41,171 nt of DNA from Macrostomum lignano. Lineage: Eukaryota. The translations under genes and the position numbers were made by a program. Below the pieces are notes generated by a model, which saw only the letters and a program-made list of their open reading frames with translations, had not been told where the DNA came from and made no database searches. This document shows positions 2,185 to 31,511 of the stretch, in pieces. Location: positions 1-41,171 of the forward strand of contig NIVC01000490.1 in assembly GCA_002269645.1 (NCBI GenBank). Direction: 5' to 3'. Positions within the stretch are counted from its first letter, which is position 1. Each line of letters begins with the position of its first letter.

Positions 2185-2249
2185 GACACCAACCTTGCTA
2201 CTCGTAGTTAGGAAGTTTCAAAGAACCCGAGGGGCGAGGGCCAGATAGA

Positions 2250-2282: not shown

Positions 2283-2406
2283 CTCCAGAGTTTAAGAAAT
2301 GACGCGGGCTTCTGATTTCAAAGATCTTGTCTGTGGTTGAAGGCTTCTATTCTGTTTTTGCTCTCCTGCCACACTTGCACCTACTACCCCCTGATTGCCT
2401 CTGATT

Positions 2407-3470: not shown

Positions 3471-4582
3471 TTGTTTTTCTTTTGCTTCATTATTTTCCCT
3501 GAACTGCTCTTTCTTTCGCTTTCCTCTTGCCTTTCTTGGTTCTTGTGTTTTTCTGTTTTTGGTTGACTCAATTTTGCGACTTACCCCTGGTCAGCCACGA
3601 TTTACGGTGGCCGGATCGGCCAGGTCGGCCAGCAGTTGCGCATGTATGTTTGGTAAATATTGTAAGGTTAATATTTATAAAATTGTATTTTATTTTGTCC
3701 AACAAATATTATTTTAAAATTCAATATTTTTTTGCCAAATAAAGCCTAATAATATAGAAACAAAATAGCAAACTATAAAGTGGTATCTAATTATAATATT
3801 TGAATAATATTTGTAAGTCAATCCATACTCCTTGCTTAAAATAATCTATTTGGTTATCTAAGTATATGTTTAAACTCATAGCTAAAAAGTTATCAATAAA
3901 CATAATTTTATTAATGTACTTATCAAACTAGTAGACTTACTAATACTATATTCATTATATATTGTTATAACTTTGAATACAATAAGTGATAAAAATGTTC
4001 AATTCAAGTTTGGTTATAATTTTTTAAATGACCTCTATAAAAAAGCCTAAATAAACAAATTTGCTAATTAATAATTTTTTGTTCCATAAGTAAAAGACGC
4101 AGGGTATTAATATTAAGTTTTAATCAGAGAGATAGATAAGAGATTAGTGGAATAGTAGAATGATATATATAGTAAGGTTGAGGCATTGAGCAATTAAAGT
4201 TAAAGTGTAAGTTAAGCTAGGCAGATACAAAATGGAATGAAAGGGAAGCAAGTATAAATGTGCTGACTAACAATAAAAAATAGCAACATATATAATAAAT
4301 AAAAAGTACTATTTTATGCTTGCATTAAAATTTATTAGATTGATTTTATTAGAAATGGATTTGATTAGAAAATATCAAACCTTAAAGAGTGAATAAGTTA
4401 TTGAAATTTATATTTACAAAGCCAAGGTTTAAGTTGGCACTATAGCATTTTTAATCTGAAATAGAAAGTTGTTTGATTCCATTGCTAATTATTATCTTTA
4501 TTAAGTTGGCAAAAAATTCCAAAATGAAAGTAAAAACTAGCTAGTCAATTAATATTTTTACCCATTTTTTCACCTCTCACAG

Positions 4583-4750
4583 GCAGTGCTCCAGTGCCAG
4601 ATTCTGAGCCCTGACCAATGCAAGCAGTCTGGCTTCACTAGTGCTCTAGAGTGCTCCTCTTGCTCGCAATTGAAGCAGTTCGGCCTGTCTCAGTTGGATC
4701 AAGCCTGTCAGCAGTGCTGCAAAGGCGACAGTCTAGACAGTGCCAAACTG
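4583..4750 (+). CDS. SELENOF: Selenoprotein F (Sep15), internal exon with the Cys-rich N-terminal domain
   Basis: Acceptor ttttttcacctctcacAG, donor GTaatt. Translates AVLQCQILSPDQCKQSGFTSALECSSCSQLKQFGLSQLDQACQQCCKGDSLDSAKL, matching the Sep15 pattern C..GF...L.CSSC..L.QF.L.QLD..C..CC. Phase 0/0. Confidence 0.93.
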
Positions 4751-4951
4751 GTAATTTGCTGACTGCTGAACTCTTCTTCTACAACTCTGCTTTTGTGAAT
4801 CAGTCTATTTGGTTTGCAGTGCTGTGTATTTTTTTGTTTGATCACTGTGCCAATCGTGGTATTCAATAATCTGCTTCTGTATTCAAGCATCTGATTCAGT
4901 CAATCTTCTTTCTTTTCTCTCGACTGCAACTCGCTATCTGGCCTGCAAATC

Positions 4952-7705
4952 ATGGCTGATCGCATGCAAGACCAATCTGTTCATACAGCTGTACGACCTG
5001 GAGCAGCCCCGGGCAAGGAAGCCAGCTCGGCTAAGCGAAATCCTAATATAGTGATGCGCCAGCCACCTGCCGAATCAGCAAATAGAAACTCGTCCGATTT
5101 AGATGGCGACAATATTCAACCGCCTCAGCAGCCGCCGCCAGTTGCGCCGAAGCCTAAAGGCAAGAAAAAAGATAAGAAAGAGAAAGACAAAGACAGAGAG
5201 AAGAAAAAGAAAAAAGACAAGGATAAGGACTCTGCTTCATCGCCGCCAGTGCCACCGCCGCCAGTAGCGCAGCCACCACTGCAGAAAGAGCCGCCCCCGT
5301 CAGTGCAGCCAATGCCTTCCCAGGCGCCGCCGCCACAGACACAGCCTGCGCCACCACAGCCGAAACCGCGCTCTCACGCTTTGCCTCAGACGGTGCCGTC
5401 ACCGCAGCAACTGCCTTCGCCTACTCTACCGCCTCCCCAACCAGCGCAGGCGCAGCAGCAGTTGCGATCTTCGTCTCTGCCTCGCAATCAACCGGTAAAT
5501 GCGAGCGGATCCACCAGCGGAGCTGTTACCGCATCCGCTGCTCCTATGTTGCCTAATGCCGCAGTCGCTGCTGCAGCAAGCAAGCCGCAACAGTCTCAAT
5601 CGTTCCATGGCACCACCGCTGCCAGCCAGCCATCCGCCAGCGCCGTACCAGTTGATAATTTCGGTCCTGGCTTAGTTGGCATTGTTAATCACGGCAATAG
5701 TTGCTACATGAATGCCATAGTGCAATGCATCTGCCATGTTGACCCGCTGGCGCACTACTTTGCGTCCGAGCTATACCTACAAGACCTGTACGCGGGCACA
5801 GTTGATAAAAAAGGCCGCCCCATCCCACACGAATATCGCACCGAACTCACCGAGGCATTCGCTCAGCTATTAAAATCGCTTTGGTTTGGCAACTATCAGC
5901 CTCAACTGTCTGACAATCTTCGTCAGATTGTTGCTCAGACTCGACCGGAACTGGCTCTCCGGGATCAACAGGACGCCCACGAGTTTATGCTGCTGCTCCT
6001 GGATCATCTCCACGATGAGCTCAATGGCTATAAACGACAGCCTAAGGCTAAACAGAAGCCGCCGCTACCCCCTTCTGTCAATGCCGACAGTGCCACTTTT
6101 GCCGACGACCACGCTCAAAGAAATCGTTCCGTTGTCTACCAGTTGTTCTATGGTTACCAGCGCAATCGTCTGCAGTGTCCTGGATGCAGTTTCACCACCA
6201 GCACTACGGAGCCTATCACATGCTTGTCTCTGCCAATTCCTGTAGGCACAACCCGAGCGCTCACTATCGTACTAGCTGACGAGCGCGGCCGTCAGACTCG
6301 ATTCGGCTTGGAAGTTGCTGCTGATGGTTCTGTGCGCGAGCTTCGACGCAGTTTGACAACTCGCTGGCAGCTGGAGGATCCCCGTCATCTGCTCCTGTGC
6401 GAACTTGGACCAAACGGATTCTGGCGCACATTCCGCGACACGGATTCCACGGCTCTGTTGTGCGAGCTGGGCGAAGCAGGCAGCCTCTATGCTATTCAAC
6501 TGCCCAATCCAGTTATGGACGATGGCGACGATTCTGACTCGAGCGACTCAGAGCCCGTCTATCGACCGGACGGTATCGGTGCTGGCATCCGACCCCAGGA
6601 AGAGGACCTTAGCTACATTCGCATCGTGTCCGTTCACTGCGAGCGCACCCGCAGCGGAGAGCTGCGCCGCTTTACTGGCCCGCTGCACACTCAGCTCCAG
6701 GTACACTGTACTCATGCCGAGCTTAAAGAGGCCCTACTAACCGAACTGGAAAGGGCTGGAGATCTGGCTCGAATTGCTAATAAACGCGATGTCTATGTTG
6801 AACTGCGCCTTGTTGACGGACCTCCGCAGTCCTCTGTCCTCCAGCAGAATCAGCGTTCACCGCCTCTTGTTGGTCCCGCTGTAGACCGGGCATTGAACTT
6901 TAATCTGACCGATGGCGGGCCGCGTCATCTTAAACTCACAGTTGTCTGGGGTGTCGCCGAACGACAGCGCTACGCTGCCGCTTACGTTGATGAAATTGAA
7001 GCCGACGCTAGTCTTCGGACGGCGGCTGCTCAACAGCAGGACAGGCCAGTCAGCTTGCAGGACTGTCTGGCCGAGTACATGCAGGGCTTCCCAGCTTCTT
7101 GGATGTGCCCGAACTGTCGCCGAGTTCAACAAGCTGAACAAATCTCACGAATGTGGACTTGCCCTGATCTGTTGGTCATTCAATTGAAACGATTTCAACA
7201 GACTGGAACGCGCAAATCCAAGGTTTCCGCTTTTGTCCAGTTTCCTATCGAATCGCTGGACATGTCCGAATACCTTGACGAGGAGAATCTTGGCCGCCTG
7301 AATCCTTACTCGCTGTCTGCCACTGGCCGGCATCCGCAGTCAGCAACGCCAGCCGATTTCACCTACGATCTGGTTGGCGTAGTCAACCACACTGGCAGCC
7401 TACAGTCTGGCCACTACACCGCCTTCACGTTGAGTCAATCTGATCATCAGTGGTGGCGATTCAGCGACGGCCAAGTTGAAGCTCTGTCCGACATGACCGC
7501 TGTTAGCTCTTCGGATGCCTATCTGCTCTTTTATCAGCGCAGAACTCTTCGGGCCATTTTTGTTAACAATGCTCACTGGAGTGTAGCGATCGCACAGCAG
7601 CAAATGTACGAGCAACAGTTTGAGCAGCAGCCGCCTCAATCACAGCCGCTGCCATTCCAATCGCTCAATTTGCCACGGACGCGTCTCTGCCGCGAGAAGA
7701 TCTAG
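4952..7705 (+). CDS. USP31/43: Ubiquitin carboxyl-terminal hydrolase (peptidase C19), USP31/USP43-like; intronless; probably extends to 7995
   Basis: Cys box GIVNHGNSCYMNAIVQC, QQDAHEF, CPGC/CPNC zinc ribbon, LVIQLKRF, His box VVNHTGSLQSGHYTAF and WWRFSD. The insertion CLSLPIP...LLLCELGPNGFWRTF...HLKLTVVW resembles the USP31/43 ubiquitin-like insert. Pro/Gln-rich N-terminus. Confidence 0.9.
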   Translation: MADRMQDQSVHTAVRPGAAPGKEASSAKRNPNIVMRQPPAESANRNSSDLDGDNIQPPQQPPPVAPKPKGKKKDKKEKDKDREKKKKKDKDKDSASSPPVPPPPVAQPPLQKEPPPSVQPMPSQAPPPQTQPAPPQPKPRSHALPQTVPSPQQLPSPTLPPPQPAQAQQQLRSSSLPRNQPVNASGSTSGAVTASAAPMLPNAAVAAAASKPQQSQSFHGTTAASQPSASAVPVDNFGPGLVGIVNHGNSCYMNAIVQCICHVDPLAHYFASELYLQDLYAGTVDKKGRPIPHEYRTELTEAFAQLLKSLWFGNYQPQLSDNLRQIVAQTRPELALRDQQDAHEFMLLLLDHLHDELNGYKRQPKAKQKPPLPPSVNADSATFADDHAQRNRSVVYQLFYGYQRNRLQCPGCSFTTSTTEPITCLSLPIPVGTTRALTIVLADERGRQTRFGLEVAADGSVRELRRSLTTRWQLEDPRHLLLCELGPNGFWRTFRDTDSTALLCELGEAGSLYAIQLPNPVMDDGDDSDSSDSEPVYRPDGIGAGIRPQEEDLSYIRIVSVHCERTRSGELRRFTGPLHTQLQVHCTHAELKEALLTELERAGDLARIANKRDVYVELRLVDGPPQSSVLQQNQRSPPLVGPAVDRALNFNLTDGGPRHLKLTVVWGVAERQRYAAAYVDEIEADASLRTAAAQQQDRPVSLQDCLAEYMQGFPASWMCPNCRRVQQAEQISRMWTCPDLLVIQLKRFQQTGTRKSKVSAFVQFPIESLDMSEYLDEENLGRLNPYSLSATGRHPQSATPADFTYDLVGVVNHTGSLQSGHYTAFTLSQSDHQWWRFSDGQVEALSDMTAVSSSDAYLLFYQRRTLRAIFVNNAHWSVAIAQQQMYEQQFEQQPPQSQPLPFQSLNLPRTRLCREKI

Positions 7706-7995
7706 GCGACGGCGGCGAGGTAGCGCTCAGGCGATCCGCGCGTCCGCCACAGGCTACTCTACCTATCAACCTCATTCCTAATATGATGCCTGCACCTCCG
7801 CCTCAGCCACAGGCGCCAATTCTGTCCATTGACGAGACAGCCAGCGGCATGACTGTTAAGACTGGTCGAGCTCGGATTCACGTTCCAGATAGTAAGAAGC
7901 GTCAGGGCAAATGGGTGTGGCGCGGCGGCGTCAAAGTCTGGGACGGTCCGGATCCGCCGCCACCGCAGGAGCAGCCGGTGCCGCCGCCTGAATGA
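7681..7995 (+). CDS. Probable true C-terminus of the USP protein in a shifted frame
   Basis: An overlapping open frame (7624-7995) reads ASLPREDLGDGGEVALRRSARPPQATLPINLIPNMMPAPPPQPQAP...PPPE*. It has the same GC-rich, Pro/Gln-rich style, and GC drops only after 7995. Confidence 0.6.
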   Translation, partial: ASLPREDLGDGGEVALRRSARPPQATLPINLIPNMMPAPPPQPQAPILSIDETASGMTVKTGRARIHVPDSKKRQGKWVWRGGVKVWDGPDPPPPQEQPVPPPE

Positions 7996-12643: not shown

Positions 12644-15600
12644 CTACTTGAGATCCCAATAGTGGTGGCTGTAGTAGTCGGGCACTCTGATGTTGAACTC
12701 CTTCGCCTTATATTCCGGCTGCCGGTCCACAGGCCGAAGAAAGGCGGGTCGCGGTGTCGTACCGGCGCTGCAGAAATTGGCCAGCTCGATTTTACCGTCG
12801 ATTTCGGTCACACGGGAGGGCCCGATAGTCACCCGAAACTGGGAGACGCGAATCAGAGGATGGACTCGGTTGATGTAGCTCTCCGGCTCTTGAGGCAGTT
12901 GGTCCGGCAATTTCTCGCGAATGCTCACTGGTAGAATGTCTCTACAATCAGTGATGCAGGACTGCATAGCTTTTCTGGCTTCATGGAAGTCTTCTGGATC
13001 ACTCCGAGTGCACACTGAGCAGGAATTATCGAAGTCTCGCCAGCTCTGGTGTCCATCCAAAGTTCTTTGAGGTGCCTCGAACTCTCTATTGAAATCCGTC
13101 GTGGCCTTATCCACCAGCAGTTTTAGCTGTTGTTCGGTATTTTTATAGTCTGGAACTTCAAAGTCGCAGTTGATCTGGCTTGGCACTGCTTCCAGTTTGG
13201 CCTGAATTTCCGCTTTGATTGAGCGACACTCGGAATCGAATTGCCACCATTCTTGATCTGATTCTTTTGCGCTTACAGGCAGAAACTTACAGGCAGTGGC
13301 TGCGTCTGAGCTGAAGTCGATTGAACTTGAAGGCTCCGGTGCCTCAGTGAGGCTTTTGGCTGCCTCTGTCAGTGAACTGAACGGCTGTGGTGCCTCAGTG
13401 GGGCTTTTGGCTGCCTCTGTCAGTGAACTGATCGGCTGTGGTGCCTCAGTGGGGCTTTTGGCTGCCTCTGTCAGTGAACTGATCGGCTCCGGTGTCTCAT
13501 GGAATTCGACAGCTGTTTCTGAGAATCTAGGATCATTGCTGATTCTCTCCTCAACATTAGTCAATGCGTTCAACTCCCAAGGAGTGAGGAGGCGCTCTTC
13601 AAGTTCTTTAGCTAGTGAAGCTTGAGTAGTCTTAGGATTCATTTGAGTCGGAGAAGACAAACTGAAAGCTTCGTTGTGACGTGTGTAAGCACTGGAAATG
13701 CTTGCAAACGGAGATGTAGCCTTTGTTGTGATGGAACCTTCGAAGCCAAGGTGCTCAGTATATCTGCCATTGTTTCGCATACCCTGTGTTTTCTCATCCA
13801 GTGTGATCTGCTTAGCTTGTATTGTATATTCCTGCAGATCGATTCCACCTGACTCGGCTATGAGGCAGATCTGCTTTAAGGACGCAACGCAAATATTTCT
13901 GAAGCTGATGGACGGAGCGGCAAGTGTTATGCCGAATTTCAGAGCAAGTTCCCTTTCTCGGAACTCATTGCCAGAAAGTTTGATTGGCTTTCTAGTTTTT
14001 ATTTTCAATACATTCCTGACACACTCGAAAGTTTTTGCATTGATGAATCGGACCAAATTCTCCTTGTCAAAACTTGGGCAGTCAATTTGAAGTTCGTCAA
14101 ACTGGCAGTCTTTTGCAGCTCCAAAATCTGGCAGTTCTGATTCTGAGCGAATAAGAAAAGAAGCTGCGGTGATTCCACTGTTCACCCGAATTCTGCCCGA
14201 TGAAGTGACCTGCAGGCTGGAATCCACTTTTAGGCTCCCGATGTGCAGCTCGCTAGCGCAGTCAATACGAAGTGACTTAATAAATGAGATCTCTCCATCA
14301 ATACTGACAACTCTTGCTGATACTGCCACTTCATCGCTAATCAGGCACTTGCGAATATGCACTTTGCTGGCAGCACTGATCCAAGATCTTTCACTCGTGT
14401 CTGCACCATTTATTTCCACTTCGCTGCCCTCTAGGTGGAAGCTTCTGCATTTGGAATTCTCTAATTTGAGCAACCCCTGCTTGCCAAATGACTTCACTGC
14501 ACCGTTAAGTTGGCAGTCCGATAGACTCAGTGATCCGGACACAAACAGACTGCACCTGTTGCTCACTCTGGCCCCGTGGATAAAACCATCATGACTGCGC
14601 AGTGTTAGGGATGCAGAGAACTCCGGGTTTTCCATTTCACAGCGCTCACAGTCGATGCTCACATTTTGATCGAACCTGCAAAGTTTCATTGCGTCAAATG
14701 TGTGACATTTCAACGTCACTTCTCCTTTGAATCCACAGCACTCGCTAATTGAAATTTTGTTGAATTCGTCGATTTTAAAAGTCAACTCTGTTGAAAATCC
14801 TTCAATCGTTGCAGTGGCCGAAGCTTTGGATCCTTTGGGGCAAATCCAGGCTGATCCAACTTTGGCAGTTTTAATTTCCAGCTTGTTCACTTTCAATACA
14901 AGCTCTTGCTGAATGTCTGTTTCACCAGCTAAGACAAAAGAGTCGCATGACAGTTCCGTGTGCTTTAGTGATGAAGTCAAAATTGACATATTTTCCACTG
15001 AGCCCTTTAGCGAATCAATAAATCCTGAGCTTATCTTACATTGTGTCGGCTCAGCGCTCAAAATCAGCATCGAAGTCTCAACATTTTCTAGTTTTATATC
15101 ATTACCGGTCAAAAGAGCTGTATTCTCAATCGTCACGTGACTCAACACAACCGTCTTGGGTCTCGAATTCACTTGAAGCTGCATTGTCCTGATGTTTTTT
15201 ATGTTCACAGCTGTTCCTTCAGCGCATGTTTCAGGGCCAGACATCACAAGCAATTCTTTTGTGAATCCTTCGCTTTCTTGTTTGGAATTTCTACCGTCTA
15301 GATCAAGCACCCTTGTCTGTACCTGCATTCGATCCTGCACCAAAACACCACAAACCATTGTAACATCTGCTTTTAGTAGAAGGCTTTCAATGAATTCACA
15401 CGCGGTCACCTGCGCAGTAGTTTCAACTTTCGCTTCAACCTTTTGAACACAACAGCCTTGAAGTTGGAGTTTTTTTGTCTTAAGTTGGACCTCTGCATAT
15501 CGCAAACTTTTGATCTCGCAAATGTTTGAGGCGCTGACTTGAATTCTGGTAGCATCAGTGTCTGCAACGCGGACTTCGGCGCTCTGGATGCAGGCTGTAT

Positions 15601-18600
15601 CCCGAATGTTGCAGCCAGTCATTGTGAACTGAGCATCCGCTTGAATGGTACCGTTTTTGAAGACGCATTCCGTCAAGGCGATGTTCTTGCCAGCGAGTTC
15701 GACAGAGTCGATTCTCGATACGAGATTCAACAGCACTGCTGGTGCGGCCATGGTTTCTTTGGCGTGAATGAAGAGACTTGTCTGCAGTCCAAAAGTGCTT
15801 GTAATGCAGCAACGCCTGCACACGGCTGTTACCTGACCAATTTCTGAGTCACTGATTGCCAGAATGCCGTTACTTTGTACTGTCAGATTGTGCAGACTGC
15901 AGTTTGACTTGATTCGTACATCACCCGAAATTCTTTTGAAGACGACACTGTTAACGATTTCTGTTGTCGATACTGAGGCGAAAAGTGCATCAGTAATGTT
16001 TATCTCTTCCGATTTTACTGCGAGCAGCCGGACTCCCACGATTCCATTTGTCGTACCCGTGACTTCTAGAGTGCGTGAAAAACATTGCGCAACTCGAGCT
16101 GCTATCGAGACAGTCAGTTTCATATCCGACTGAGATTGACAGTCGGAAATGCACAGTCTACCCGAGTTCAGCCAACTCAGACCTACCGAGTTGAGATCAT
16201 GAATGTTGAGATAAGAATTTCCTATATCCACATGGAGACTTCCGACTAGGAGTTGTTTCAGTGTTGTATGACCCTTGGCGATGACGACTGTGCTCTTATT
16301 TGTAATGAGCCTTTCGACATTCACAGACGAATCAGCCAGTAGTTTGAAATGGTCCAGCTGACAATCGCTCACAGTAACATGACCCAAACTGGCAACATCA
16401 CAGCCTTCATCAATCATCAGCCTCTCTAAGATTGTGTTTCCTCTTGACAAGATCTTCAGGGACTTGCCGCTTGAGTCGGACATTCTCAGCATTCGGCAGG
16501 AGATTTCAATGTCCTTCTGGACTTCACACATTCTTACTGTAGCTCCCACTGAACAGCCACGAAGTTTCATCGAGCCCAGTAAGCTGGCAAACGCGTGCGC
16601 AGTTTCTGACCAGGCTACGAGGTCGCCAAAGACGCTAGATTTGGACAGAAGAAAACCACTGTAAGCATCTACATGCATTTTCTCTGTCTCTGTCTCGAAA
16701 AATTTTAACTGCTTTCCCTGGAATGCCAGTCTAGTGAATTTGTTTTGTTTTGACGTCAAATCTGAGCAGAAAGCGACGAATTCGTCACTCATCGATTGCT
16801 CAATGGATAATTCTCCTTCTTTAGGGCATATGAACCAAAGTTTGGAGAGCATAGTTTCACTTACTTTTGCTTTGAAGCTGCATAACACCAAAGTTTCAGT
16901 GACATAAACATTTGCAATTTCGAAGTTATTGCTCGTGCAGGTTGCTGTTCCTAGACAGGTCTTTGTTGAGCTACCTGCAATCTTCGTCATGTTACTAGAG
17001 CGAACTTCTAAATCGGTGACGCTCGAGTCAGTTATTGTAATATTTTCAGCTTTGACAATTTTAAGTGCAGCAGCTAATAAGTCGTCAATTTGAAGGTCGG
17101 AGCACGAAACAGTCAGGTGCTGTGCTTCTACCTGCTGAATGCTGATTTTCTCTTCTGCGGTACAGTGCAAGTCTTTAAGGAAACAAAACTCACCGATGCT
17201 AAAGTGTCGCTTAGTTTTTGCCAAGAACTTTTCAAACACGTGCGATGTTCTTACCAGCAACTCATCAGTGACGTTGCAATTTAGGTTAGTAAACGAGCAC
17301 TTTAGAATCTGGCAGGAGTCGCTCAATATTGTGCAGTTTTCTAACTTCGATGACTCTAGCTTAATGCTGACAAAGCTATCAGATGCTATTAGATAGGTTT
17401 TAGGCGCAAATACAAGCTTTGCATCGAGTTCATTGGAAATAATTGCCTCCAAAATCTCTGTGCTTGTACTATTCACGATACTCGCTGATTCAGACAGTAA
17501 ACAAAGTCTCTCAGATGCTAAATTGCCCACTCGAGCATTCTTAGCGGTGATCCAAACCTCCGTCTCACCAAGGATCTCGTCAATGCCGAGGCTTTCCTCC
17601 GCGGCCATCAGCAAATTCCGTGCTGACCAGATTCCGTACGCTTCAATTTGAGCACTTCTTAGAGTTACAGAGGCTTCTTCAGATGTCAAGCTTCGAGTCT
17701 TCAAGAGTTTCTCCGCAAAAATGTGCACATCCCCAGTGCACACAAGCCATGTTGTTGGCTGATCGGACCAAAGCTGGGCACAGACGGATTTGATGAGGGC
17801 TCCATCCTTCACCGCCATGGAGCCATCAGACCGCCAGCTTTCACAATCATACATGACTTTCTGGGCCTCAATTCGAGTAGGTCCGATCAGGCACAACCAC
17901 CGACTTCGTTCGAACAGTCCGTTTGATTTCAGCGGCGTCCAATCGCACTTGTAAAGCTTCTTCCAGTAATCCGATAAGTCTTCTTCTGTTTCAGAAAACC
18001 CTTCCTTGATGGAAGCAGTAAAGCCTGCAAGCAGACTAGCAACTGAGGAATTTCTCTGCAGACCAGAAGTCTCTGTCACCGTCTGAAGTACCATTTTAGA
18101 TGCAGCCGAAACAACCTGGGCACACCGATTATGATTTTCTCTGAAAGCCTGTGCAGCGTCTAGCACCATGATTTTCAGTGCGTCACACATCTGATTGCTT
18201 GAATCTGGCTGCAGTACCTTTTCTAAATCTTTGATTGAAGCCTTCAGCTCGTCAGACCCCGATTCGATATCTGTGCAAATTTGTTCGGCAAAGCCAAAGT
18301 GCAATATGCTTCTGGTGGATATCGTTGGGCTACACAGCTTTGAAAATATCGTGATGAGGGCACAGCTTTTCATTTTTAGCGAATTTTTGGCCTGAACGTT
18401 TGCTGGTGTGAATTTGCTTGCATCATCGCCATCGTCGCGTTTACACAAGTGCATTAGCACTTTTCCGTTAAGTATGACATCTTCTGCACTCAGCTGACTT
18501 TGGTTGTAAATAAGCTTTGATGCTGAGATGGAGAGCTTCGAACGACATTTTAAGCTTCCAACGACAAGAGCATTTTCCGCTTCGCAAGCAATGGATCCCG

Positions 18601-21600
18601 TGTCTTGTATAGAAGCCAGATTATCAATAAATTTACTTATCAGGCGTAAGGTCTTGCAGAATGTGATTTTGCTTCCAGGTCCAAGTGAAGCGGATTTATC
18701 TGCATGAATCTCTACAGCATTGATGTTTCGCATTTCGAAGGCTGATTTTGCTATGAGTTCCTGAGCACAGATTCTCACTTCAGCAGTGCTTACTTCATCG
18801 TAGCTGCCCACTAAGGAATCCTCAAGCACAACGCCATACGGACATTCTACAGTCGTGTCTTCAAAAATCAACCTATCAACTTTTCTTACTAGCAGTCGCG
18901 CTTGATTCAGCTCGAGTTTGCTGGACTCCCAGATTAACTTCTTGACAGACTGGACCACCATCAGCTCTGATACAAAAGTTCTCGCTGAGTTCATTGCTAG
19001 CAGCTCACCGTTATCAGCATTCACTAGAAGCGTTCCAACTTTAATCTCACAATTTGGGTGCATTTTCATCTCGTTTTCAAATTCAATCAGCAGCAGGGGT
19101 GGCTTTTGTTCTTCGAACTGAGTGATTTCACCACTTATTTTAACGGTTTTTGCGTTCAATATTAGTTTGCCAGAGTTTACTGAAGTTTCACTTCCAAATC
19201 GAAAGCTGCCGCAGCAGTTTAAATTTTCTGTTTCAATCACCATTGCTGGATTTTCTCCAGCCATGCATGAAGTAACTGTGCCGCGAATCAGAACGCTGTC
19301 TGCCTGAATGGTTGCTTTTTCAACACTTTGGAACGCAATGGTGGCCTCTTCAGACTGTATGAACTCCTGGGCTGTAACAAGGCAATTCTTCAGCCCCACC
19401 AATTCGACAAGCCCGCTAAGGCTAAGGTCCTTGTTGCAAGTCAGAAGAAAGTCATCACAAAAACTTTGGTGGCTCGTAACAGACAGTATATCTGCTACTG
19501 ACAGTCGGTGTGCTGTCAGTTGGCTGGGCAAGTCCATCTCGACTCGAATTTCGAGCTGAAGACTGATCTCCGATCCAAGAAAAGTCTGACATTTTAACCT
19601 CGCATCTCGTTGGCCTTTTATTGTGACCTGGTAGTCATTGTGGCACAGCTCATTGTCGTTTAAGTGGCTCACAAGAAGACTGCTTACTTGCACCTGTTGC
19701 GATTTGGCCACAGTAAGATTCAAATCCATTCCAAAATCTTTGTGTGGCTGAACTATCATTGTGTGACACTGAACATTTCGACGTAGTTCAATCATCTCGG
19801 CAGCTCGCAGGTGAAGATAACTCTGATCGGGTGCGCTAACTTTACTGTGCATTATCACGGAGCCCGACAAGCACTGAAAGCTTGCGCCATTTGGTGGTAG
19901 CTTTACTTGGAGAAGCTGGTCATGAGAATTGGCTTGGACATGGAGACTCTTAGAGTTTGTCGCTACGCACACAAGTTGAGCTGCAGCGTTTACATGTCCC
20001 TCGAGGTAGCTGTTTTCATGAGAGCCCAGCCAAAAGATGAACACAGTTCCATGAGTCGATACAATGCTTCCTGCAGAATTATCAATGTCAGTGGCAACAA
20101 TCAGCGTATCCTTGTAGCACACCACGGAGCCAAAGTTAGCAAATTCATTTGCTCTGATCTGCAAATTGCCTCTTATGCACTTAAGCTTGATTTTGGGCAA
20201 AATATGAAGCCATTGGTTTGTCACTATGACAACCGAATCCAGCGCTTCAAAATCATTTGCCAGTGTACAGTCATCTTCCAAATCAATGGACAGGTGCTTT
20301 GTTCCAATTACGCTTCCCTTGTCTATAAAGCGTCGTCCTTTGATATGAAGCGTAGTTCTACACTCTTCCTTTGTCCTAGAGAGGGTCAGTCTTCCGTGAT
20401 GAGTAAACTGATCTGCGATAAAAATGGTAACTTCATCAGCTGCAAAGTCCCACTCAGATCCATTGTGCGTATTTGCTTTGTGTAGCACGATTTCAATGCT
20501 TTTAGGATTTGGTGCTTCGTAGTTTGACTCTGGCGGGCACACCAGTCTGCTGCTCGAACTGAATTCGGCTGTTGCTGCTGGAATGACAACTCCCATGCAC
20601 TGGATGCAGCTATCCACTTCTACATCAACCCCGGTTTGGTTGAAGGAAGAGTGCACAATGAAGGGCCCTTTTGTTATCAGCACATTTTCTCGAAATGAGA
20701 TGTGACCACCTGGACCACAAATTACACTAAGCACGGATTCTTCCGCTTTAACATTAGCCTGGATGGTGAGTTTATCGAAGGCTTTGACTGTAACTCTGTA
20801 GCCGCTGATGCTGCCGCAAGCTTGATCGCTTGCTCTCCTAGTCGTTATTTGAACCTCCGCTTCACTTTCCACAGCTGAACAAAGCGCTGCCTTTTTATCT
20901 TGAATAAAATTTCCGACATCGAGGCTGAGAATTTGGAAAGTGTTGTGTATGCGTTGATAGTTTTCCAAAGTGTTTGCCACCGACAAAGTGCCACCGTTCA
21001 CCAGCCAAAGGTCTGCTTTCTTGTGAACTTTGCAGTTTCCAACTTCCAAAGCAAAAAAGTCTTCGACAATGACTCTTCCAAATACTTCAAAATTTTCACG
21101 GCAGTATCCGCTTATGGACCCGCTTTTCCACACTGACAGCCGCTCGACATAAGCATCTCCTTTGATCTTGAGGTGAACTTTGGCCCCTATGAGCTGACCT
21201 AGATTGTCAAAATTCTGCTTGACAACGCAGAAAATGGATTCTGACTTGAAAATTCCCTTACTGTTTTCTGCCCATTCCAGACGCGCTCGATTGGCATCCA
21301 GTCTGGCTCGTTCCTGTTTGACCAGATTCGCATCGCTGCTCAGATCATTCACTGACTGCCGCAGCGTTGCGCTCGACCTTCGACCCCGGTTATTTCTATA
21401 GCTGGGATCGGCTCCTGAGCAAAGTAGCTGGTTTAGTTCTCCGGAATGACTGGTACATCTTGTGAGTAGTTGTTCATCCAGTCTTCTGCCTTCTCCATCC
21501 AATGTTAATTCAAGCTCTTGGTTTGTCATGCTTTCCCGGTGGTACTTTGCCACGCGAGCTGCTGCCTCTTGTACAGACTCTGGAGATCGTACATTTTGAG

Positions 21601-22129
21601 CGAAAACTTTTAGCTTGGTCTTGGCGAAGACAAGCCCAACATTCGTTATGCTACCAGTGAGGCTTAAAGTTACTTCTTCTGCTCTTTGCTCTTCTTTTCG
21701 CGAGTATCCGATAGTTCCTTCCATGCTAATTTCTGCGGTTCCATCCACTTCGATTGTAACACTGCTGTCAAACTGCTTTTTAAAACGACTGTCCTGCAGG
21801 GGCAGGAGGGAGCCTGATACTTTAAGATTGCATGCTTCACGACTTCTTGACTCGCATATCAGCTTCGAACACTGTACAATCGCCCCTACATCTATGAAAA
21901 CTGAGGGAGCAACTAGTGTAAGTGTGCTGCCCTGTAGTTTATTAGAAGTGATGTGGATCTCTCCTTCCGACTCGATTGTTAACCGGTTGAACTTCTGGCT
22001 TCGGTCAGCAACTGAGACCCTGGATGCAGCAATCCTGATGCATTCGTTCATTTTCATACTCATTATTAATACAAACAGTTCTTTCGATTGTTTGTCAACT
22101 TTGACCTGGCAGCTCCACCTCTCAGGGCT
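12644..22129 (-). CDS. Giant (~3,150 aa) single-exon protein, predicted long beta-helix with filamentous haemagglutinin-like repeats; function unknown
   Basis: 9.5-kb uninterrupted frame. Short alternating-hydrophobic strands throughout, plus FHA-like motifs (SITNVGLVFA, NFDNLGQL, FANFGSV, ATDIDNSAGSIVSTHG, FIDNLASI). The track's start at 22174 is a TTG. A strong acceptor (ttattctttcAG) precedes 22129 and the first ATG is at 22063. Confidence 0.85.
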   Translation of the reverse strand, partial: SPERWSCQVKVDKQSKELFVLIMSMKMNECIRIAASRVSVADRSQKFNRLTIESEGEIHITSNKLQGSTLTLVAPSVFIDVGAIVQCSKLICESRSREACNLKVSGSLLPLQDSRFKKQFDSSVTIEVDGTAEISMEGTIGYSRKEEQRAEEVTLSLTGSITNVGLVFAKTKLKVFAQNVRSPESVQEAAARVAKYHRESMTNQELELTLDGEGRRLDEQLLTRCTSHSGELNQLLCSGADPSYRNNRGRRSSATLRQSVNDLSSDANLVKQERARLDANRARLEWAENSKGIFKSESIFCVVKQNFDNLGQLIGAKVHLKIKGDAYVERLSVWKSGSISGYCRENFEVFGRVIVEDFFALEVGNCKVHKKADLWLVNGGTLSVANTLENYQRIHNTFQILSLDVGNFIQDKKAALCSAVESEAEVQITTRRASDQACGSISGYRVTVKAFDKLTIQANVKAEESVLSVICGPGGHISFRENVLITKGPFIVHSSFNQTGVDVEVDSCIQCMGVVIPAATAEFSSSSRLVCPPESNYEAPNPKSIEIVLHKANTHNGSEWDFAADEVTIFIADQFTHHGRLTLSRTKEECRTTLHIKGRRFIDKGSVIGTKHLSIDLEDDCTLANDFEALDSVVIVTNQWLHILPKIKLKCIRGNLQIRANEFANFGSVVCYKDTLIVATDIDNSAGSIVSTHGTVFIFWLGSHENSYLEGHVNAAAQLVCVATNSKSLHVQANSHDQLLQVKLPPNGASFQCLSGSVIMHSKVSAPDQSYLHLRAAEMIELRRNVQCHTMIVQPHKDFGMDLNLTVAKSQQVQVSSLLVSHLNDNELCHNDYQVTIKGQRDARLKCQTFLGSEISLQLEIRVEMDLPSQLTAHRLSVADILSVTSHQSFCDDFLLTCNKDLSLSGLVELVGLKNCLVTAQEFIQSEEATIAFQSVEKATIQADSVLIRGTVTSCMAGENPAMVIETENLNCCGSFRFGSETSVNSGKLILNAKTVKISGEITQFEEQKPPLLLIEFENEMKMHPNCEIKVGTLLVNADNGELLAMNSARTFVSELMVVQSVKKLIWESSKLELNQARLLVRKVDRLIFEDTTVECPYGVVLEDSLVGSYDEVSTAEVRICAQELIAKSAFEMRNINAVEIHADKSASLGPGSKITFCKTLRLISKFIDNLASIQDTGSIACEAENALVVGSLKCRSKLSISASKLIYNQSQLSAEDVILNGKVLMHLCKRDDGDDASKFTPANVQAKNSLKMKSCALITIFSKLCSPTISTRSILHFGFAEQICTDIESGSDELKASIKDLEKVLQPDSSNQMCDALKIMVLDAAQAFRENHNRCAQVVSAASKMVLQTVTETSGLQRNSSVASLLAGFTASIKEGFSETEEDLSDYWKKLYKCDWTPLKSNGLFERSRWLCLIGPTRIEAQKVMYDCESWRSDGSMAVKDGALIKSVCAQLWSDQPTTWLVCTGDVHIFAEKLLKTRSLTSEEASVTLRSAQIEAYGIWSARNLLMAAEESLGIDEILGETEVWITAKNARVGNLASERLCLLSESASIVNSTSTEILEAIISNELDAKLVFAPKTYLIASDSFVSIKLESSKLENCTILSDSCQILKCSFTNLNCNVTDELLVRTSHVFEKFLAKTKRHFSIGEFCFLKDLHCTAEEKISIQQVEAQHLTVSCSDLQIDDLLAAALKIVKAENITITDSSVTDLEVRSSNMTKIAGSSTKTCLGTATCTSNNFEIANVYVTETLVLCSFKAKVSETMLSKLWFICPKEGELSIEQSMSDEFVAFCSDLTSKQNKFTRLAFQGKQLKFFETETEKMHVDAYSGFLLSKSSVFGDLVAWSETAHAFASLLGSMKLRGCSVGATVRMCEVQKDIEISCRMLRMSDSSGKSLKILSRGNTILERLMIDEGCDVASLGHVTVSDCQLDHFKLLADSSVNVERLITNKSTVVIAKGHTTLKQLLVGSLHVDIGNSYLNIHDLNSVGLSWLNSGRLCISDCQSQSDMKLTVSIAARVAQCFSRTLEVTGTTNGIVGVRLLAVKSEEINITDALFASVSTTEIVNSVVFKRISGDVRIKSNCSLHNLTVQSNGILAISDSEIGQVTAVCRRCCITSTFGLQTSLFIHAKETMAAPAVLLNLVSRIDSVELAGKNIALTECVFKNGTIQADAQFTMTGCNIRDTACIQSAEVRVADTDATRIQVSASNICEIKSLRYAEVQLKTKKLQLQGCCVQKVEAKVETTAQVTACEFIESLLLKADVTMVCGVLVQDRMQVQTRVLDLDGRNSKQESEGFTKELLVMSGPETCAEGTAVNIKNIRTMQLQVNSRPKTVVLSHVTIENTALLTGNDIKLENVETSMLILSAEPTQCKISSGFIDSLKGSVENMSILTSSLKHTELSCDSFVLAGETDIQQELVLKVNKLEIKTAKVGSAWICPKGSKASATATIEGFSTELTFKIDEFNKISISECCGFKGEVTLKCHTFDAMKLCRFDQNVSIDCERCEMENPEFSASLTLRSHDGFIHGARVSNRCSLFVSGSLSLSDCQLNGAVKSFGKQGLLKLENSKCRSFHLEGSEVEINGADTSERSWISAASKVHIRKCLISDEVAVSARVVSIDGEISFIKSLRIDCASELHIGSLKVDSSLQVTSSGRIRVNSGITAASFLIRSESELPDFGAAKDCQFDELQIDCPSFDKENLVRFINAKTFECVRNVLKIKTRKPIKLSGNEFRERELALKFGITLAAPSISFRNICVASLKQICLIAESGGIDLQEYTIQAKQITLDEKTQGMRNNGRYTEHLGFEGSITTKATSPFASISSAYTRHNEAFSLSSPTQMNPKTTQASLAKELEERLLTPWELNALTNVEERISNDPRFSETAVEFHETPEPISSLTEAAKSPTEAPQPISSLTEAAKSPTEAPQPFSSLTEAAKSLTEAPEPSSSIDFSSDAATACKFLPVSAKESDQEWWQFDSECRSIKAEIQAKLEAVPSQINCDFEVPDYKNTEQQLKLLVDKATTDFNREFEAPQRTLDGHQSWRDFDNSCSVCTRSDPEDFHEARKAMQSCITDCRDILPVSIREKLPDQLPQEPESYINRVHPLIRVSQFRVTIGPSRVTEIDGKIELANFCSAGTTPRPAFLRPVDRQPEYKAKEFNIRVPDYYSHHYWDLK
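13332..13490 (-). repeat. Coding tandem repeat, 51 bp / 17 aa (PISSLTEAAKSPTEAPQ) x3
   Basis: Three near-identical 51-bp units read directly. Confidence 0.95.
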
Positions 22130-24489
22130 CTGAAAGAATAATTTCAAATTAATATTATTTGAGTAGTAAGACAATGAAAATATATTTTAACTTCTGCTGA
22201 TACGATTTATTTACTGATTGTCACGCACGACGCGCGTATATAACTACGTGTAGGGGGTTGTTATGCCTTCCAAGTTTAATTGACTTCAGTCATTACTAGC
22301 AATTGTCCCACCTAATTTTATTTGTTATAGTTTTAAGGCCCACTTACACCACCATCAAATACATGTATTGTATTGCATAGTCACAAAATTTTAAGTTAAA
22401 GTGGTTCGAAATTTCATGTAGTCGAAAAGTCTAGCTAGTCACCTTCGGCTTAAAATTTAAAAGATCTACTTAACGATGGGAAATTATATCTGAACAAGTC
22501 AACGGCTTATGAAATTTACTATCTTCAACTACGTTAAAGTTCGAGCTCAGAAGCGCTCTTATAACCGTTCTATGATCTATACTTGTTGGACCAGCCAGAT
22601 ATGCTAAACCTCATTCAAACTATATCTTGTCGAGGAACTGAAAAATCTTCTCTCAATCAGCTAATTAAAACCATGGCGCCTTTTAAAGCTTAGCTAGGGT
22701 TCAGAACTTAAAACGGAACTATAAATACAAACAGAGATCAAAATGTCTCAGCGGTCGGGCTGATGGGTTAGGCGCTGATGGAATGGGCCCAGGTTAGGGA
22801 GCTCCCCGCCTCCCTGTCTCTCCGGCCCAGCACCTTCACCATTTACTCTTTATAAGCTATTATTAGGATTATAGCACACTTAGAAATATTTAAAGTTTCC
22901 AGTGGTCAACAAGTGGCAGCTTTATTTTAACTCAAGGCATAACTCTCCTCTCTTTCCTCACCAGCCTAAGCTAGAGTCTTGTGAGCTAAAGTCAACTCAA
23001 TTTTTCGGAGACAAAAAATCACAATGATCAACCACGATCACTAGCCTGGCTGAGAAACCGTTGTATAGCAGTCAAATTTCAGTCCCCCTCGACTCCTAGC
23101 ATGTACGTACGAATACACATGTACCGTACATGTACATCAATCCCCGAGGGAAAGAGAGTGACAGTACACACAAAAAACCCATGCAGCAACATAGTTCTAC
23201 CGAGTTGACAAACCCCATTCAATGTAATTCCTTTAATTCTCCCCTGTCATGCCCCTGGGGAATTCCACGTTTTTATTCTGGGCTCCTATGTGTTCTGGCT
23301 ATTGCTACTCTTAATAAATGCACTCATTCTGATGTATTCGTCCTCCTTTTCACGCTGCCTGCCCAGCGCCCACGCAATAGCCGCATCATTACTGTAATTG
23401 CGTGCATATATTATTGTTCCCATTGATCCCCCTACTATTAGCGATCAGTAACGCGTATATTGCTTCCCGATTTTCTCTCACCCACGGAATGATCGCGCAA
23501 CACCCTTGTTCTCACCCTGATGGATATCGAGCAAAACCCACTGGCCCTAATCCACCAGGGCGCGAGTGACCTGCGACGTGTCTGTGCCCAGAGACCTTTT
23601 TTAATTTAAGGGCTTTTTAATTCTTCCGCGGATCCGAAAGAAAGAGGCGGATACTATCCAAACTATATTGAAAGCTAATTTATGTGTTCTTTTCTTACGA
23701 GAGTATGTCTTAAATTCCTATTTTGATCATTTCTCAATTTGCTTCAGTAGTTTGCATTAGATACCGAATTTTTATGGGGGCGCATTTTCTACCGGATGTC
23801 ATTTTATTTGGCAAGGTGATCCAGCACCAGAGTTGTCGAAGCTACTGATTAGGGGGCGCCCATGCATATACTTTTAATTGCCAGCCACAGGAGGCCCTCC
23901 TTCCCCACCCGCTAAGTTACTAATGTATGGAATACTCTACTACAAGAATTATTTTTAGTCGGAGGGCTGAATTAGCGCGCACAAGCAGAAGCGCGCGCAG
24001 ACACAAGCGCGCTAACACAAGCGCGCAGACACTTTTTACGGCAAGAAAAGTCGTAAATATTGTAGTACTCTGCACCCCCCTTCTCGGCACGTTGGTTTTA
24101 ACTCCTGTATACACTACATCGTAGATGCACACTTACTCTTGAGCAATTAGCTACAGAGCTTTGAGCTCAAAAATATAATCGGATCCTACGCCAACGTCGG
24201 GGCTGTAGGCGTCTGGTTCAGGTAAAATTCTGTCTCTCGCGTCAGTCACAACAAATATATTGTTGGACGAAATGCAAAGACGAGCAATCAAAAGTAAAGT
24301 AAAAAATCCGAATAAAGCAAAGTAAAACTACCGGCACAAAGCGCAGTATGAAACCAGATGCTTTGATGAAAATAGATTTCCATTCATTGGAGGTTAGGAA
24401 ACAGGAATGGATTCAAGAAAATTGGTTGCCGCTGCAAAGTAGTGGGTTGCCACAACGAAGGCCGAAGGCCGGCGGATGCTCGGATACCA

Positions 24490-27235: not shown

Positions 27236-27415
27236 TCAAAACAGGCCCGTGATTTCATAGCGACGCCTGATAGAATACACAGCTTTTCTCTTTACGTCCC
27301 GCCATGGCGAAATGTGCTCAGCACTATCACCTCTCTCGATGGCAGCGACAATCAGGTCGTACTTTTCGTTGCTTATCTTGCGATAAGGGTTCTCGCCCTG
27401 TAGGATTCTGCTCAT
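27236..27415 (-). pseudogene. N-terminal HTH relic of an IS630/Tc1-like transposase
   Basis: RKISNEKYDLIVAAIERGDSAEHIS...DVKRKAVYSIRRRYEITG fits the Tc1/IS630 N-terminal HTH pattern. No DDE domain follows. Confidence 0.55.
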
Positions 27416-27823
27416 CCACTGCATCTTTGGCTGTAGCAAAATATACCAATATTGATGGGCTGCAGAGGGCAGAAACGATCTATAACGCCGAGGCGCGTAG
27501 CGCCGATCGGAGTGTGTCATGCCGTGAATTTGGCATAAAGAAACTCAAGGTTTATTTTAACTAGCAAGTAGCTTATTAAATAATGACACGAGCAGGGGCT
27601 GAGAGAACACCGAAATAAAGTCACGTGATGATAAATAACTACGTACAAGTACATGGCGGCTTAGGGGATGGCCAGTCAGAGCGAAGGGAGAGGAAAGAAT
27701 GGTGTGCACGTACGATGCACGTACATAGCATAAGTTAGTTGGTTAGCCAGTGCCTAGAGCTCAGCGCTCCGGCACCACAGAGTGTTAGCTCATTTCTGCC
27801 CGATGCGACCCATCCATATTAGT

Positions 27824-29200: not shown

Positions 29201-31511
29201 GGTGGGGGGGGTTCTTAGCCTTAGGATTGTGGGAAAGAATTCTATTTCTAATCTGATTCGAGTGTACTTTATTGATACTCTAGTAGCGTTTATTACAGAA
29301 TGTCTTACAGGGAGGCAGCACGCCTGATAGACTGGGAGTCTAGGGGATAGGCAAAACGCCTGGTAGACAGTAAGTTTAGGGAGATAGGCCGAACGCTTAA
29401 TGGACAGTACGTCTAAAAACTACGCCTAAATCGGACAATACGCCCTTGAGGTTGGAAGAAGGCAGAATGCCTGTACTGGGCACTGGGCAGCACGCTCTTG
29501 GGGAAGAGAGAGAGAGAGAGACAACACGCCTCTATTGAACAGCACTGTTGTACCTTGGGAGAAAGAGGCAAAATCTTCCCAAGTAAGTGATAATGACAAA
29601 TATGCTATTTTTAGAACAAAAATATCAGACACTCGGATCGAGGCAAGTATTAGGCAAGAGCCCAGGAGCAAGAAGTTGGTCTTTCACTTGTGTTTTTCGT
29701 CGGTATATTTAATAAGAAAATGAAGATGGCGGTTTCTTTAAAACAAACTACAGTATTTATACGTGTCTTTTAAATACAATAGGTGCAAAATATCAGTTTT
29801 TATCAGTGCGCTAATAAAATATGGTTAGAAAATATATTTTTTCAAGGAGATAGAAAATAATGCTAACCACCTATATAATCACCTAATCACCTAGTAATCA
29901 TAGTAATCACCAGAGATCCAAAGCCACTCTGAGTCTAAGGACCTCGATGACAACATGTACTTTTAAAATTTCACCGATGTTTAGCCGACGTAAAATGACG
30001 TTATCCGTCGATGTAACGTGAGAGTGCATATTTTATACTCTCGGATTGTTTACAGTCTAGTCGGATTGCTGTACGGGTGTGACGTTGCTAGTTTAAAGTG
30101 GTCCCGCAAAAGGGCCGTTGGACTACAAATTTCCTTACAATTTCTCATTTAATATTCTCCAATCCTGTATTCTCACGTTTACTTGTAGTAGCGCCCAACG
30201 AATCTGTATCAATTGCTAAATCACTCCGTACTTTGTAAGCCTTGTGTACGGCTGTAGGGTCTCGCGCGATCGATAATTTCTGTTTCTTGTTTTTTCCTCG
30301 ACAGCCAATGATAACTCTCCGCATATATTATGTTAACCCTCCTGCGCTCCTTTATTAACCCCGCCTAGCGGCGGGCTGGGGTTTTTTTCACTCCCTTCGC
30401 CACTTTCGCTCTTTCGCTCTCTCGTTCTCTCGTCCTCGTGCCTCCTTATCTCTCGCCACGGCTCCACTCCGTCTGGGCCAGACTGTCTACGCACTCTTGC
30501 TACACTGTGTACTGCCACGGGCCGACGCCCAATCTCGCCGCTTTGTTTGTTTGCCTACTTGTTACTCACAGCCATCACTTGCTACTCGGCTCCATCCCAA
30601 TTATCATCATCTACTCAACTTCCATCTATACGACTAGATTACATCAACCCATTGTTGCAGCCGCCAGTGCCCCATAACGTCATAAGCTTCTGTATTAATA
30701 TTAAACATTGATAATTATAAACCAGTTGGCGTCTTTTGTTATCTACCGCCATTGCCAAGTGCTACCGCTACAAAATCTACTCTGCCATTGTTGAGTTCAC
30801 CATCCTTTTTGGGACTAATAACGTCAGCACTCTCGTCAAACGGCCCTTTTGAGGGCTATAGCCACTACTACGCCAATAACGTGACACGGGTATAATGAAA
30901 TTTGGGATATTGCCTCGCAAAGTAGCGGCCTAACTAATTCAGAACAAATGTCAGGTATGATCATAGCTATTGGTTTTACTCGGTAGTTCACGCACTTCAC
31001 GCTCGCACTCGTAATATAGTTTTATGCTTATTTCTCTTAGATAAGAAGGTGGATAGATCTAAAGATAGTTACCGCGAATTTAAAATAGTTTTACATGTAT
31101 ACGTACAAAAACACCGCTTTTAAGGCTTTGAACTTTCCGTAACAATGTCCACCAAGCTTGTGTGGTTTTTAATCCGATTCTTCTTATTTTTCTTCCTAGA
31201 TTCGTCTCCTAAATCCAATGGCATCACATTAATTTCGGATTATTCAGTGTTCGAGTGCTGTTGATTGCGACAGTAAAAAAAATTTGTCTGGCTCTCTGAC
31301 CCTCTTGGTAATCTCTAAATTTGACAAGAGCAAATCTAATAATTTGTTATTAGAAATGAGAGCATTTCTCTAAGCACTACGATCGTAGCATAGAACTCAA
31401 TTTTAAGTACTCGTAATCGACCATTTCCTGAAAAATCTCAGCACTTGAGACTGTCTAAGTGCTAATAATTAATTCGTGCTAAGTACTTTGAGCTTAATTC
31501 TAAATTGCAGA

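Follow-up and report, generated by a model that had tools for sequence, protein, structure and literature searches.

Long beta-solenoid rods are characteristic of the fibres on bacterial and viral surfaces. Among the giant proteins of animals, AHNAK is a vertebrate-restricted scaffold protein with clear repeats of 128 amino acids (aa) and a PDZ domain, and the VPS13, ATG2 and BLTP genes are split into many exons. Here we describe a gene of the flatworm Macrostomum lignano, whose 9.5-kb exon had been read in a preliminary description as encoding a beta-helix similar to the bacterial proteins FHA and CdiA in an animal genome. The animal setting is correct: the window, i.e. the whole stretch of DNA which was analysed, is the complete 41,171-bp contig NIVC01000490.1 of M. 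lignano assembly GCA_002269645.1. On balance we favour, with modest confidence, the view that the gene encodes a giant, probably cytoplasmic, mostly-beta protein of ~3,160 aa which belongs to an unnamed metazoan family. To our knowledge no intracellular animal protein this large with a beta-solenoid architecture has been described.

The minus strand of the window is open at 12644-22174 for 3,176 codons, counted from the first TTG, and the stop lies at 12644-12646. Downstream of an AG acceptor (22131-22130) the exon runs from 22129 to 12647 and comprises 3,161 codons, which agrees with the unbroken single exon of ~9.5 kb and ~3,150 aa that had been described. The expected stop rate at the local base composition is 5.7% of codons, giving a probability of ~1e-81 that 3,176 codons contain no stop; a chance open reading frame (ORF) was therefore rejected. 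Stops in the other five frames of the same region number 94-212. The peptides which had been quoted from the frame were located at the expected positions: ATDIDNSAGSIVSTHGTV at 20042-20095, NFDNLGQL at 21191-21214 and SITNVGLV at 21629-21652.

Two M. lignano hypothetical proteins, BOX15_Mlig022560g1/g3, correspond to this locus: a 99%-identical protein of 953 aa and its cluster mate of 1,318 aa. These models are derived from transcripts and cover the 3′ 4 kb of the ORF, but they are partial, containing only aa 1842-3176 or 2216-3176, and one NCBI model drops one 51-nucleotide (nt) repeat unit, which it treats as an intron. Whatever the fold of the protein, public annotation therefore holds only 953-aa and 1,318-aa fragments of a ~3,160-aa gene and leaves the full 9.5-kb frame unannotated, and the annotation of the locus in the public assembly is wrong. 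No mention of it was found in the literature which we searched. Further copies are present in the assembly on contigs NIVC01002682.1 (99.97% identical) and NIVC01002681.1 (99.86% identical), which end inside the giant ORF at ORF nt ~3198 and ~3006, respectively. The differences from NIVC01000490.1 amount to five 1-nt indels, one 3-nt insertion and three substitutions, and the 1-nt indels look like assembly errors. The same downstream ubiquitin-specific protease (USP) gene is kept in NIVC01002682.1, the copy in which this was checked, and because of this shared flank the extra copies look more like haplotypes or duplicates of the genome than like copies of a transposon. A transposon or viral origin was rejected on the same grounds and because there was no match to PHROGs or to viral contigs. 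At identities of 99.86-99.97%, the ratio of non-synonymous to synonymous substitution rates (dN/dS) cannot be estimated between the three assembly copies. Taken together, the ORF statistics, the transcript-derived models and the near-identical copies with their USP neighbour establish a real protein-coding gene.

The evidence on what kind of protein this is comes first from its relatives. When the first 1,000 residues were compared to 5.8 billion sequences in a word-filtered search, one distant relative was found: CAB4033201.1 from the octocoral Paramuricea clavata (1,459 aa, partial, E = 1.5e-5; pairwise BLASTP with the flatworm protein E = 1e-11 over 313 residues). A profile of these two sequences added a 2,521-aa ORF from an ENA contig (ERZ25073809:ctg31296), which is 58% identical to CAB4033201.1, and KAL3984582.1/VBB26236.1 (1,762 aa) from the filarial nematode Acanthocheilonema viteae. 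Pairwise E-values were 6e-5 between the flatworm protein and KAL3984582.1 and 6e-11 between KAL3984582.1 and the ENA-contig ORF, and a fragment of the family was also found in Wuchereria bancrofti. The flatworm, octocoral, ENA-contig and nematode proteins are colinear over an N-terminal module of ~1,300 residues, in which they share the order of a strand-rich N-terminal part, a helical insert with the motif LLxxGxDP, a core, a long strand-rich region and a non-strand segment. The core carries the family motif G-I-x-S-x-SI-x-C-V-V-K-Q...W-K-x-G-x-x-S-G. The N-terminal segment of the flatworm protein (ORF aa 16-198) aligns with the N-termini of CAB4033201.1 and KAL3984582.1, and the position of its middle segment (aa 1291-1560) matches the helical-looking C-terminal part of CAB4033201.1 and of the ENA-contig homologue.

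Pairwise comparison, profile and alignment all place the flatworm protein in the family of CAB4033201.1 and KAL3984582.1 over this colinear module. Judged by their sequences, these proteins are true homologues over the ~1,300 aa and form an unnamed metazoan family for which Pfam holds no profile and whose members come from a cnidarian, a flatworm and nematodes. That no named animal family had been recognised was confirmed, as the relatives are all hypothetical proteins and no match to the giant protein was found in Pfam or NCBIfam (E ≤ 1), its ends including the N-terminal 410 aa being searched as well, or in PHROGs. The homologues contain no Pfam domain at E ≤ 1, and a sequence search of PDB with the giant protein and with the family profile gave no match. 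The nematode gene spans 10.3 kb of a 12.6-Mb scaffold for a coding sequence of 5.3 kb and thus has introns, while the ENA-contig homologue is a single uninterrupted ORF of 7.6 kb (320-7885). The C-terminal 400 residues of the ENA-contig homologue, which is of the cnidarian type, consist of near-perfect tandem repeats of ~46 aa (GKSTYDANLKTGDFGIEASSSQNNKSIGIEAGDFKTNIKQ), and its middle looks by eye like haemagglutinin repeats, with no Pfam or plasmid match.

Homology does not extend to the full length of the flatworm protein. For ORF aa 1561-3176, neither BLASTP nor an exhaustive HMMER scan, in which the last 1,200 residues (aa 1977-3176) were compared to 1.84 billion cluster representatives, found a counterpart outside the flatworm; the scan returned only the flatworm's own copies and a 278-aa protein which matched by a repeat alone, and no bacterial relative. 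It could be argued from this that the second half (aa 1561-3176), or even the whole ORF, evolves fast, is specific to the lineage, has no conserved function and is open only because it is young, and the assembly copies, being 99.9% identical, are uninformative on selection. We find this hard to credit, because chance cannot keep a 9.5-kb frame open, three phyla share the conserved N-terminal module and the transcript-based models cover the 3′ 4 kb.

The fold was examined by modelling ORF aa 16-1215 in AlphaFold2 with a four-sequence alignment (run 1) and aa 1977-3176 as a single sequence (run 2). In run 1, stretches of moderate confidence (predicted local distance difference test (pLDDT) 55-80) were found at model residues 30-100, 150-180, 290-410 and 720-990, only the last two of which fall in the strands of beta region 1, the longer strand-rich part of the module. 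The 450 residues with pLDDT ≥ 55 were 68% strand and 1% helix, and a mostly-beta character for the first third of the protein is supported by this model. When the run-1 model was compared to PDB using Foldseek, the leading matches were mostly beta-solenoids, including IgA1 protease, EtpA, Hbp, SepA, Hap and Fap2, with poor superposition. Further solenoids were VacA, HMW1 (lower in the list), tapirins, a PL6 lyase, LpxD and an antifreeze beta-helix, and the list also contains leucine-rich-repeat solenoids and a few unrelated folds such as the ComZ pilin and the RsaA S-layer protein. Among the predicted viral structures of BFVD the best matches were fibre-like proteins of cyanophages and giant viruses (E = 8e-6 and 6e-4, template modelling (TM) score < 0.2), followed by a ‘pectate lyase’ and a ‘putative hemagglutinin’. 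Beta-helices make up most of the matches, although with E ≥ 0.24 in PDB and TM scores of only 0.1-0.2. The strand-like segments which had been noticed are borne out by the strand-richness, but the FHA-like turns are not, as the N-x-G motif is not enriched.

Hydrophobicity provides a second line of evidence. Its autocorrelation in beta region 1 peaks at lag 22 (z = 2.9), and a lag of 21-22 is the top hydrophobic period in the strand regions of the flatworm, octocoral and nematode proteins (combined z = 3.0, with a harmonic at 41). A beta-solenoid is the leading guess for the fold, and a plausible one, on the basis of the model and this period. Alternatively, the strand regions may form an open beta-sheet or groove similar to those of VPS13, ATG2 and BLTP proteins, or another non-solenoid all-beta structure, and act as a conduit or a sheet-like scaffold. 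Such a fold would suit a giant, apparently cytoplasmic, all-beta protein with helical interruptions, a lag-2 alternation of hydrophobicity is present and several modelled strand pairs, at 16-17 residues, exceed typical solenoid strands. We nevertheless consider it unlikely: there is no Chorein_N, VPS13, ATG2, Apt1 or Fmp27-type Pfam match at E ≤ 1 in the giant protein or its homologues, the Foldseek matches in PDB and BFVD (with the poor run-1 model as query) are mostly solenoids and include no VPS13, ATG2 or TamB-type structure, and the period of 21-22 residues is common to the homologues. For orthology to VPS13/hobbit-type proteins, which the preliminary description had raised against its own proposal, neither a matching domain nor a matching structure was found.

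Polymorphic toxins follow a template of a trafficking domain, filamentous repeats and a C-terminal toxin (PMC3482391), and the flatworm protein matches this only in the loosest sense, as a long filament followed by a distinct tail. The most striking suggestion of the preliminary description was that the exon might encode a horizontally acquired bacterial adhesin of the two-partner secretion (TPS) type, as FHA and CdiA are, or a contact-dependent toxin. The protein is indeed strand-rich and very long, and its C-terminal tail beyond a linker recalls that template; EtpA and HMW1, both TPS proteins, are among the weak Foldseek matches, and the gene for a bacterial-type SecA motor lies 9 kb away. 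However, none of the sequence features which define such proteins was found. We found no TPS domain (Haemagg_act PF05860) and no NPNL or NPNG motif in the giant protein, no FHA repeats (Fil_haemagg PF05594, Fil_haemagg_2 PF13332, TIGR01731) at E ≤ 1 in it or in its homologues, no VENN/pretoxin motif in the giant protein, no N-terminus resembling a Sec signal peptide in the exon or in the Met-initiated homologues, and no TpsB (Omp85/POTRA) neighbour or immunity gene, the neighbours being the USP deubiquitinase and a SecA-like ATPase.

No bacterial relative was found either. The exhaustive scan, which included the tail in the toxin position, found none for the last 1,200 aa; tblastn against plasmids gave no match with aa 16-1976 or with the FHA-looking C-terminal half of the cnidarian homologue, and the best-conserved 299 aa gave none in pattern scans of JGI metagenomes and of IMG/VR. 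As the existing relatives all belong to animals, of three phyla, and introns are present in the nematode gene, a recent transfer from bacteria is unlikely, and the SecA-like gene is not adjacent to the homologues at their loci. There is therefore no support for a bacterial adhesin or toxin having been transferred into an animal, and we consider such an origin to have very little chance of being correct. We infer that the giant protein resembles bacterial FHA-type rods in shape only and is not a member of their family.

The gene's 5′ end bears on both the completeness of the protein and its location in the cell. A eukaryotic splice acceptor had been noted there and is plausible, with TTTCAG directly before the exon start at 22129; the sequence at the junction is ttattctttcag followed by AGCCCT. 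Trans-splicing to a single 35-nt leader affects around 30-39% of M. lignano genes (PMC5730564; PMC8629364); this leader ends in ATG, and the enriched acceptor motif is [T/C]TNCAG (PMC8629364). TTTCAG followed by AGC CCT GAG matches this motif, and the terminal ATG of the leader would be in frame with AGC CCT GAG, an agreement which has a probability of 1/3 by chance. The acceptor at 22129/22130 may therefore be used for trans-splicing. In this case the mRNA would be made from the single 9.5-kb exon by spliced-leader (SL) trans-splicing, the terminal AUG of the leader would act as the start codon and the product would be a complete protein of 3,162 aa. The nematode protein KAL3984582.1 aligns by its extreme N-terminus with the first residues past the acceptor, and an internal ATG (MSMKMNEC, 22040-22063) provides an alternative start.

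A cytoplasmic location is probable, because the giant protein has no transmembrane-like segment (highest 19-residue hydropathy 1.72) and because CAB4033201.1 and KAL3984582.1 begin with Met and have no N-terminus resembling a signal peptide. M. lignano also makes very large secreted adhesive proteins, and the giant protein could be an extracellular fibrous or adhesive protein whose upstream signal-peptide exon has been missed. Its ORF starts at a splice acceptor and not at an ATG, the octocoral protein is longer at its N-terminus, and Cys makes up 3.43% of its residues compared to 1.6-1.7% in two neighbouring ORFs. The Cys-richness that had been reported is thus real, an approximately twofold enrichment, though it comes with no regular pattern. 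We give the secreted protein little weight, because the two homologues start with Met and no hydrophobic signal sequence follows, neither an open-frame scan nor tblastn with the N-termini of the homologues found an upstream exon, and an in-frame ATG donated by the leader would complete the gene model with the single exon. Furthermore, Pfam found no EGF, vWD, lectin or other extracellular domains, and the Cys residues lack spacing of the disulfide type.

We therefore return to the cytoplasmic, mostly-beta protein and to how it might work. Its strand regions would form beta-solenoid rods, ~20 nm and ~27 nm in length if each turn takes ~21.5 residues and rises 0.48 nm, joined by a Trp-rich non-strand hinge, and the whole would serve inside the cell as a rigid scaffold or spacer. 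Partners could be bound by the ankyrin-like insert and by the ~215-aa C-terminal tail, and the frequent Cys would be small core residues in a reducing compartment, not disulfides. A fuller version, in which an old metazoan family of cytoplasmic giant beta-solenoid rods converged in shape with TPS and autotransporter fibres, and in which the rod was doubled in Macrostomum and is expressed from an SL-started single exon, is one that we put forward tentatively and regard as doubtful in its entirety.

It should be noted that a number of observations weigh against this picture. Run 1 was of low confidence overall (mean pLDDT 45) and run 2 was unusable (mean pLDDT 33), so that usable modelling extends no further than ORF aa 1215. 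The best PDB match of the run-1 model, at E = 0.24 and with TM scores of 0.1-0.2, was not significant. Several strands of that model occur in hairpin-like pairs of 16-17 residues with 2-residue turns (334-349/352-368, 844-859/862-878 and 976-992) and for this reason fit a solenoid poorly. The period of 21-22 residues is only marginal when corrected for 60 lags, the N-x-G motif occurs 9 times compared to 6.4 ± 2.5 in shuffles, and neither BLAST nor hhalign detected significant internal repeats. The taxonomic spread seen for the family is that of a word-filtered search, the only one made with the N-terminal module. The twofold Cys excess would also suit an extracellular protein, and CAB4033201.1 has ~200 more N-terminal residues, which makes an upstream exon, perhaps with a signal peptide, possible. 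No expression or localisation data for Mlig022560 were found in the M. lignano papers which we searched. The scaffold role is purely inferential, and our confidence in it is clearly below that in the overall picture.

The coordinates of the gene and of the segments of its protein are given in Table 1. The 278-aa ENA protein returned by the exhaustive scan shares with the linker only a similar 17-residue repeat (SPEKxSSLTELGKDVGE, compared to SPTEAPQPISSLTEAAK in the linker); as the two proteins are otherwise unrelated, this repeat may be mobile or convergent. For the C-terminal tail there was no Pfam match, no homologue outside M. lignano and no confident model.

Table 1 Features of the giant gene and its protein in contig NIVC01000490.1 (positions on the forward strand)
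Feature	Position	Strand	Basis or remark
Whole open frame	12644..22174	-	3,176 codons + stop at 12644-12646
Polypyrimidine tract and CAG splice acceptor (ttattctttcag)	22130..22141	-	Exon starts at 22129
N-terminal strand-rich segment, ORF aa 16-198	21581..22129	-	AlphaFold2 strands, partly at pLDDT 50-76
Helical insert, ORF aa 199-305	21260..21580	-	AlphaFold2 helices at model residues 186-289, low pLDDT
Single ankyrin-like LLxxGxDP motif inside helical insert	21422-21469	-	Conserved in octocoral, ENA-contig and nematode homologues
Best-conserved family module, ORF aa 158-456	20807..21703	-	BLASTP matches to homologues; pLDDT 60-78
Core motif SIFCVVKQNFDNLGQL...WKSGSISGY	21191-21238 and following	-	Within best-conserved module
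Beta region 1, ORF aa 306-1290	18305..21259	-	AlphaFold2 (aa 306-1215), lag-22 periodicity, colinear with homologues
Middle non-strand segment, ORF aa 1291-1560, Trp-rich, probably helical	17495..18304	-	Composition and reading of the sequence only
Beta region 2, ORF aa 1561-2815, so far flatworm-only	13730..17494	-	Strand-like by sequence pattern only
Pro/Thr/Glu/Ser-rich linker	13295..13729	-	Composition; no structure in AlphaFold2 model of aa 1977-3176
51-nt (17-aa) tandem repeat in linker, 3.5 copies	13322-13499	-	Repeat analysis
C-terminal tail of ~215 aa, ORF aa 2961-3176, with Cys and Trp, not strand-repeat-like	12647..13294	-	
Candidate polyadenylation signal ATTAAA	12362..12367	-	~280 nt past stop; read from sequence

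The remainder of the contig contains two other long coding regions. At 4952-7705 (+) lies the USP, a single ORF of 917 aa (Pfam UCH 4e-60, 56% GC) which is convergent with the giant ORF. On the strand opposite to the giant ORF, 31476-36308 (+) is an ORF of 1,610 aa which continues in another frame at 36281-36664 and contains the SecA-type motor (Pfam SecA_DEAD 7.6e-24; 1.7e-33 to Bacillus subtilis SecA in PDB). Before the motor lie ~800 aa which are charged and coiled-coil-like, and after it comes TPR-like sequence, the shifted frame of which indicates an intron or a frameshift in this gene. It is unusual for a nuclear contig of an animal to encode a SecA motor; conserved linkage to the giant-protein homologues was absent at their loci. 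Inside this ORF, at 31865-32117, a 33-nt tandem repeat (7.7 copies, 95% identity) encodes the 11-aa unit EQRMERERRxK/Q.

Between the giant ORF and the SecA-like gene, a short open stretch at 27239-27544 (-) weakly resembles a helix-turn-helix (Pfam HTH_28, E = 0.06) and may be what is left of a transposase. A satellite occupies 38160-41171 up to the end of the contig, with at least 13 copies of a 122-nt unit at 98% identity followed by more diverged 120-nt units; the ORFs of 110-275 aa in its three forward frames are artefacts because the unit is not a multiple of three. A minisatellite of ~50 copies of a 21-nt unit (CTTTTTGCGACTTACCTAATC) is located at 2422-3452 and a CT-rich low-complexity tract at 1545-1921.

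Should the fold be confirmed, it would mean that animals have built beta-solenoid rods independently, and the protein would represent a new type of cytoskeletal or scaffolding element. A profile of the family would be worth making in order to map its true taxonomic spread. M. lignano is used as a model species, and transgenesis has been established in it (PMC5730564).

The closest systems to the flatworm protein are its own homologues, which like it have no Pfam domain and no signal peptide and follow the same module order. Identity to them is only 16-23%, and the second strand-like region of ~1,250 aa, the repeat linker and the tail of the flatworm protein have no counterpart in them; the cnidarian homologue has its own repeat-rich C-terminal half, and the nematode gene contains introns whereas the flatworm gene is a single exon. 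The type Vb exoproteins (FHA/FhaB, CdiA, EtpA and HMW1) are similarly very long and strand-rich, with a presumed rod and a tail past a linker, but the flatworm protein is eukaryotic, has animal homologues and shows no sequence similarity to them at any threshold tried. Autotransporter passengers (IgA1 protease, Hbp, SepA, Hap, Fap2 and VacA) and viral fibres or tailspikes provided the best, though weak, structural matches, and a coil length of 21-22 residues is within their range; TM scores were only 0.1-0.2, however, with no sequence similarity and no PHROG match, and the flatworm protein has no beta-barrel translocator, enzyme or receptor-binding domain. VPS13, ATG2 and BLTP1-3 are also giant cytoplasmic eukaryotic proteins composed mainly of beta-strands with helical inserts, from which the flatworm protein differs in lacking their family domains, in having no structural match to them and in being encoded by a single exon. 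As a tentative analogy, AHNAK likewise has several thousand residues, one giant exon and a cytoplasmic location and is proposed to be a strand-based, rod-like scaffold, but the flatworm protein lacks its repeats and PDZ domain and is unrelated to it in sequence. Giant strand-based fibrous or scaffold proteins are thus a known kind; what is unexpected here is the animal and apparently intracellular setting.

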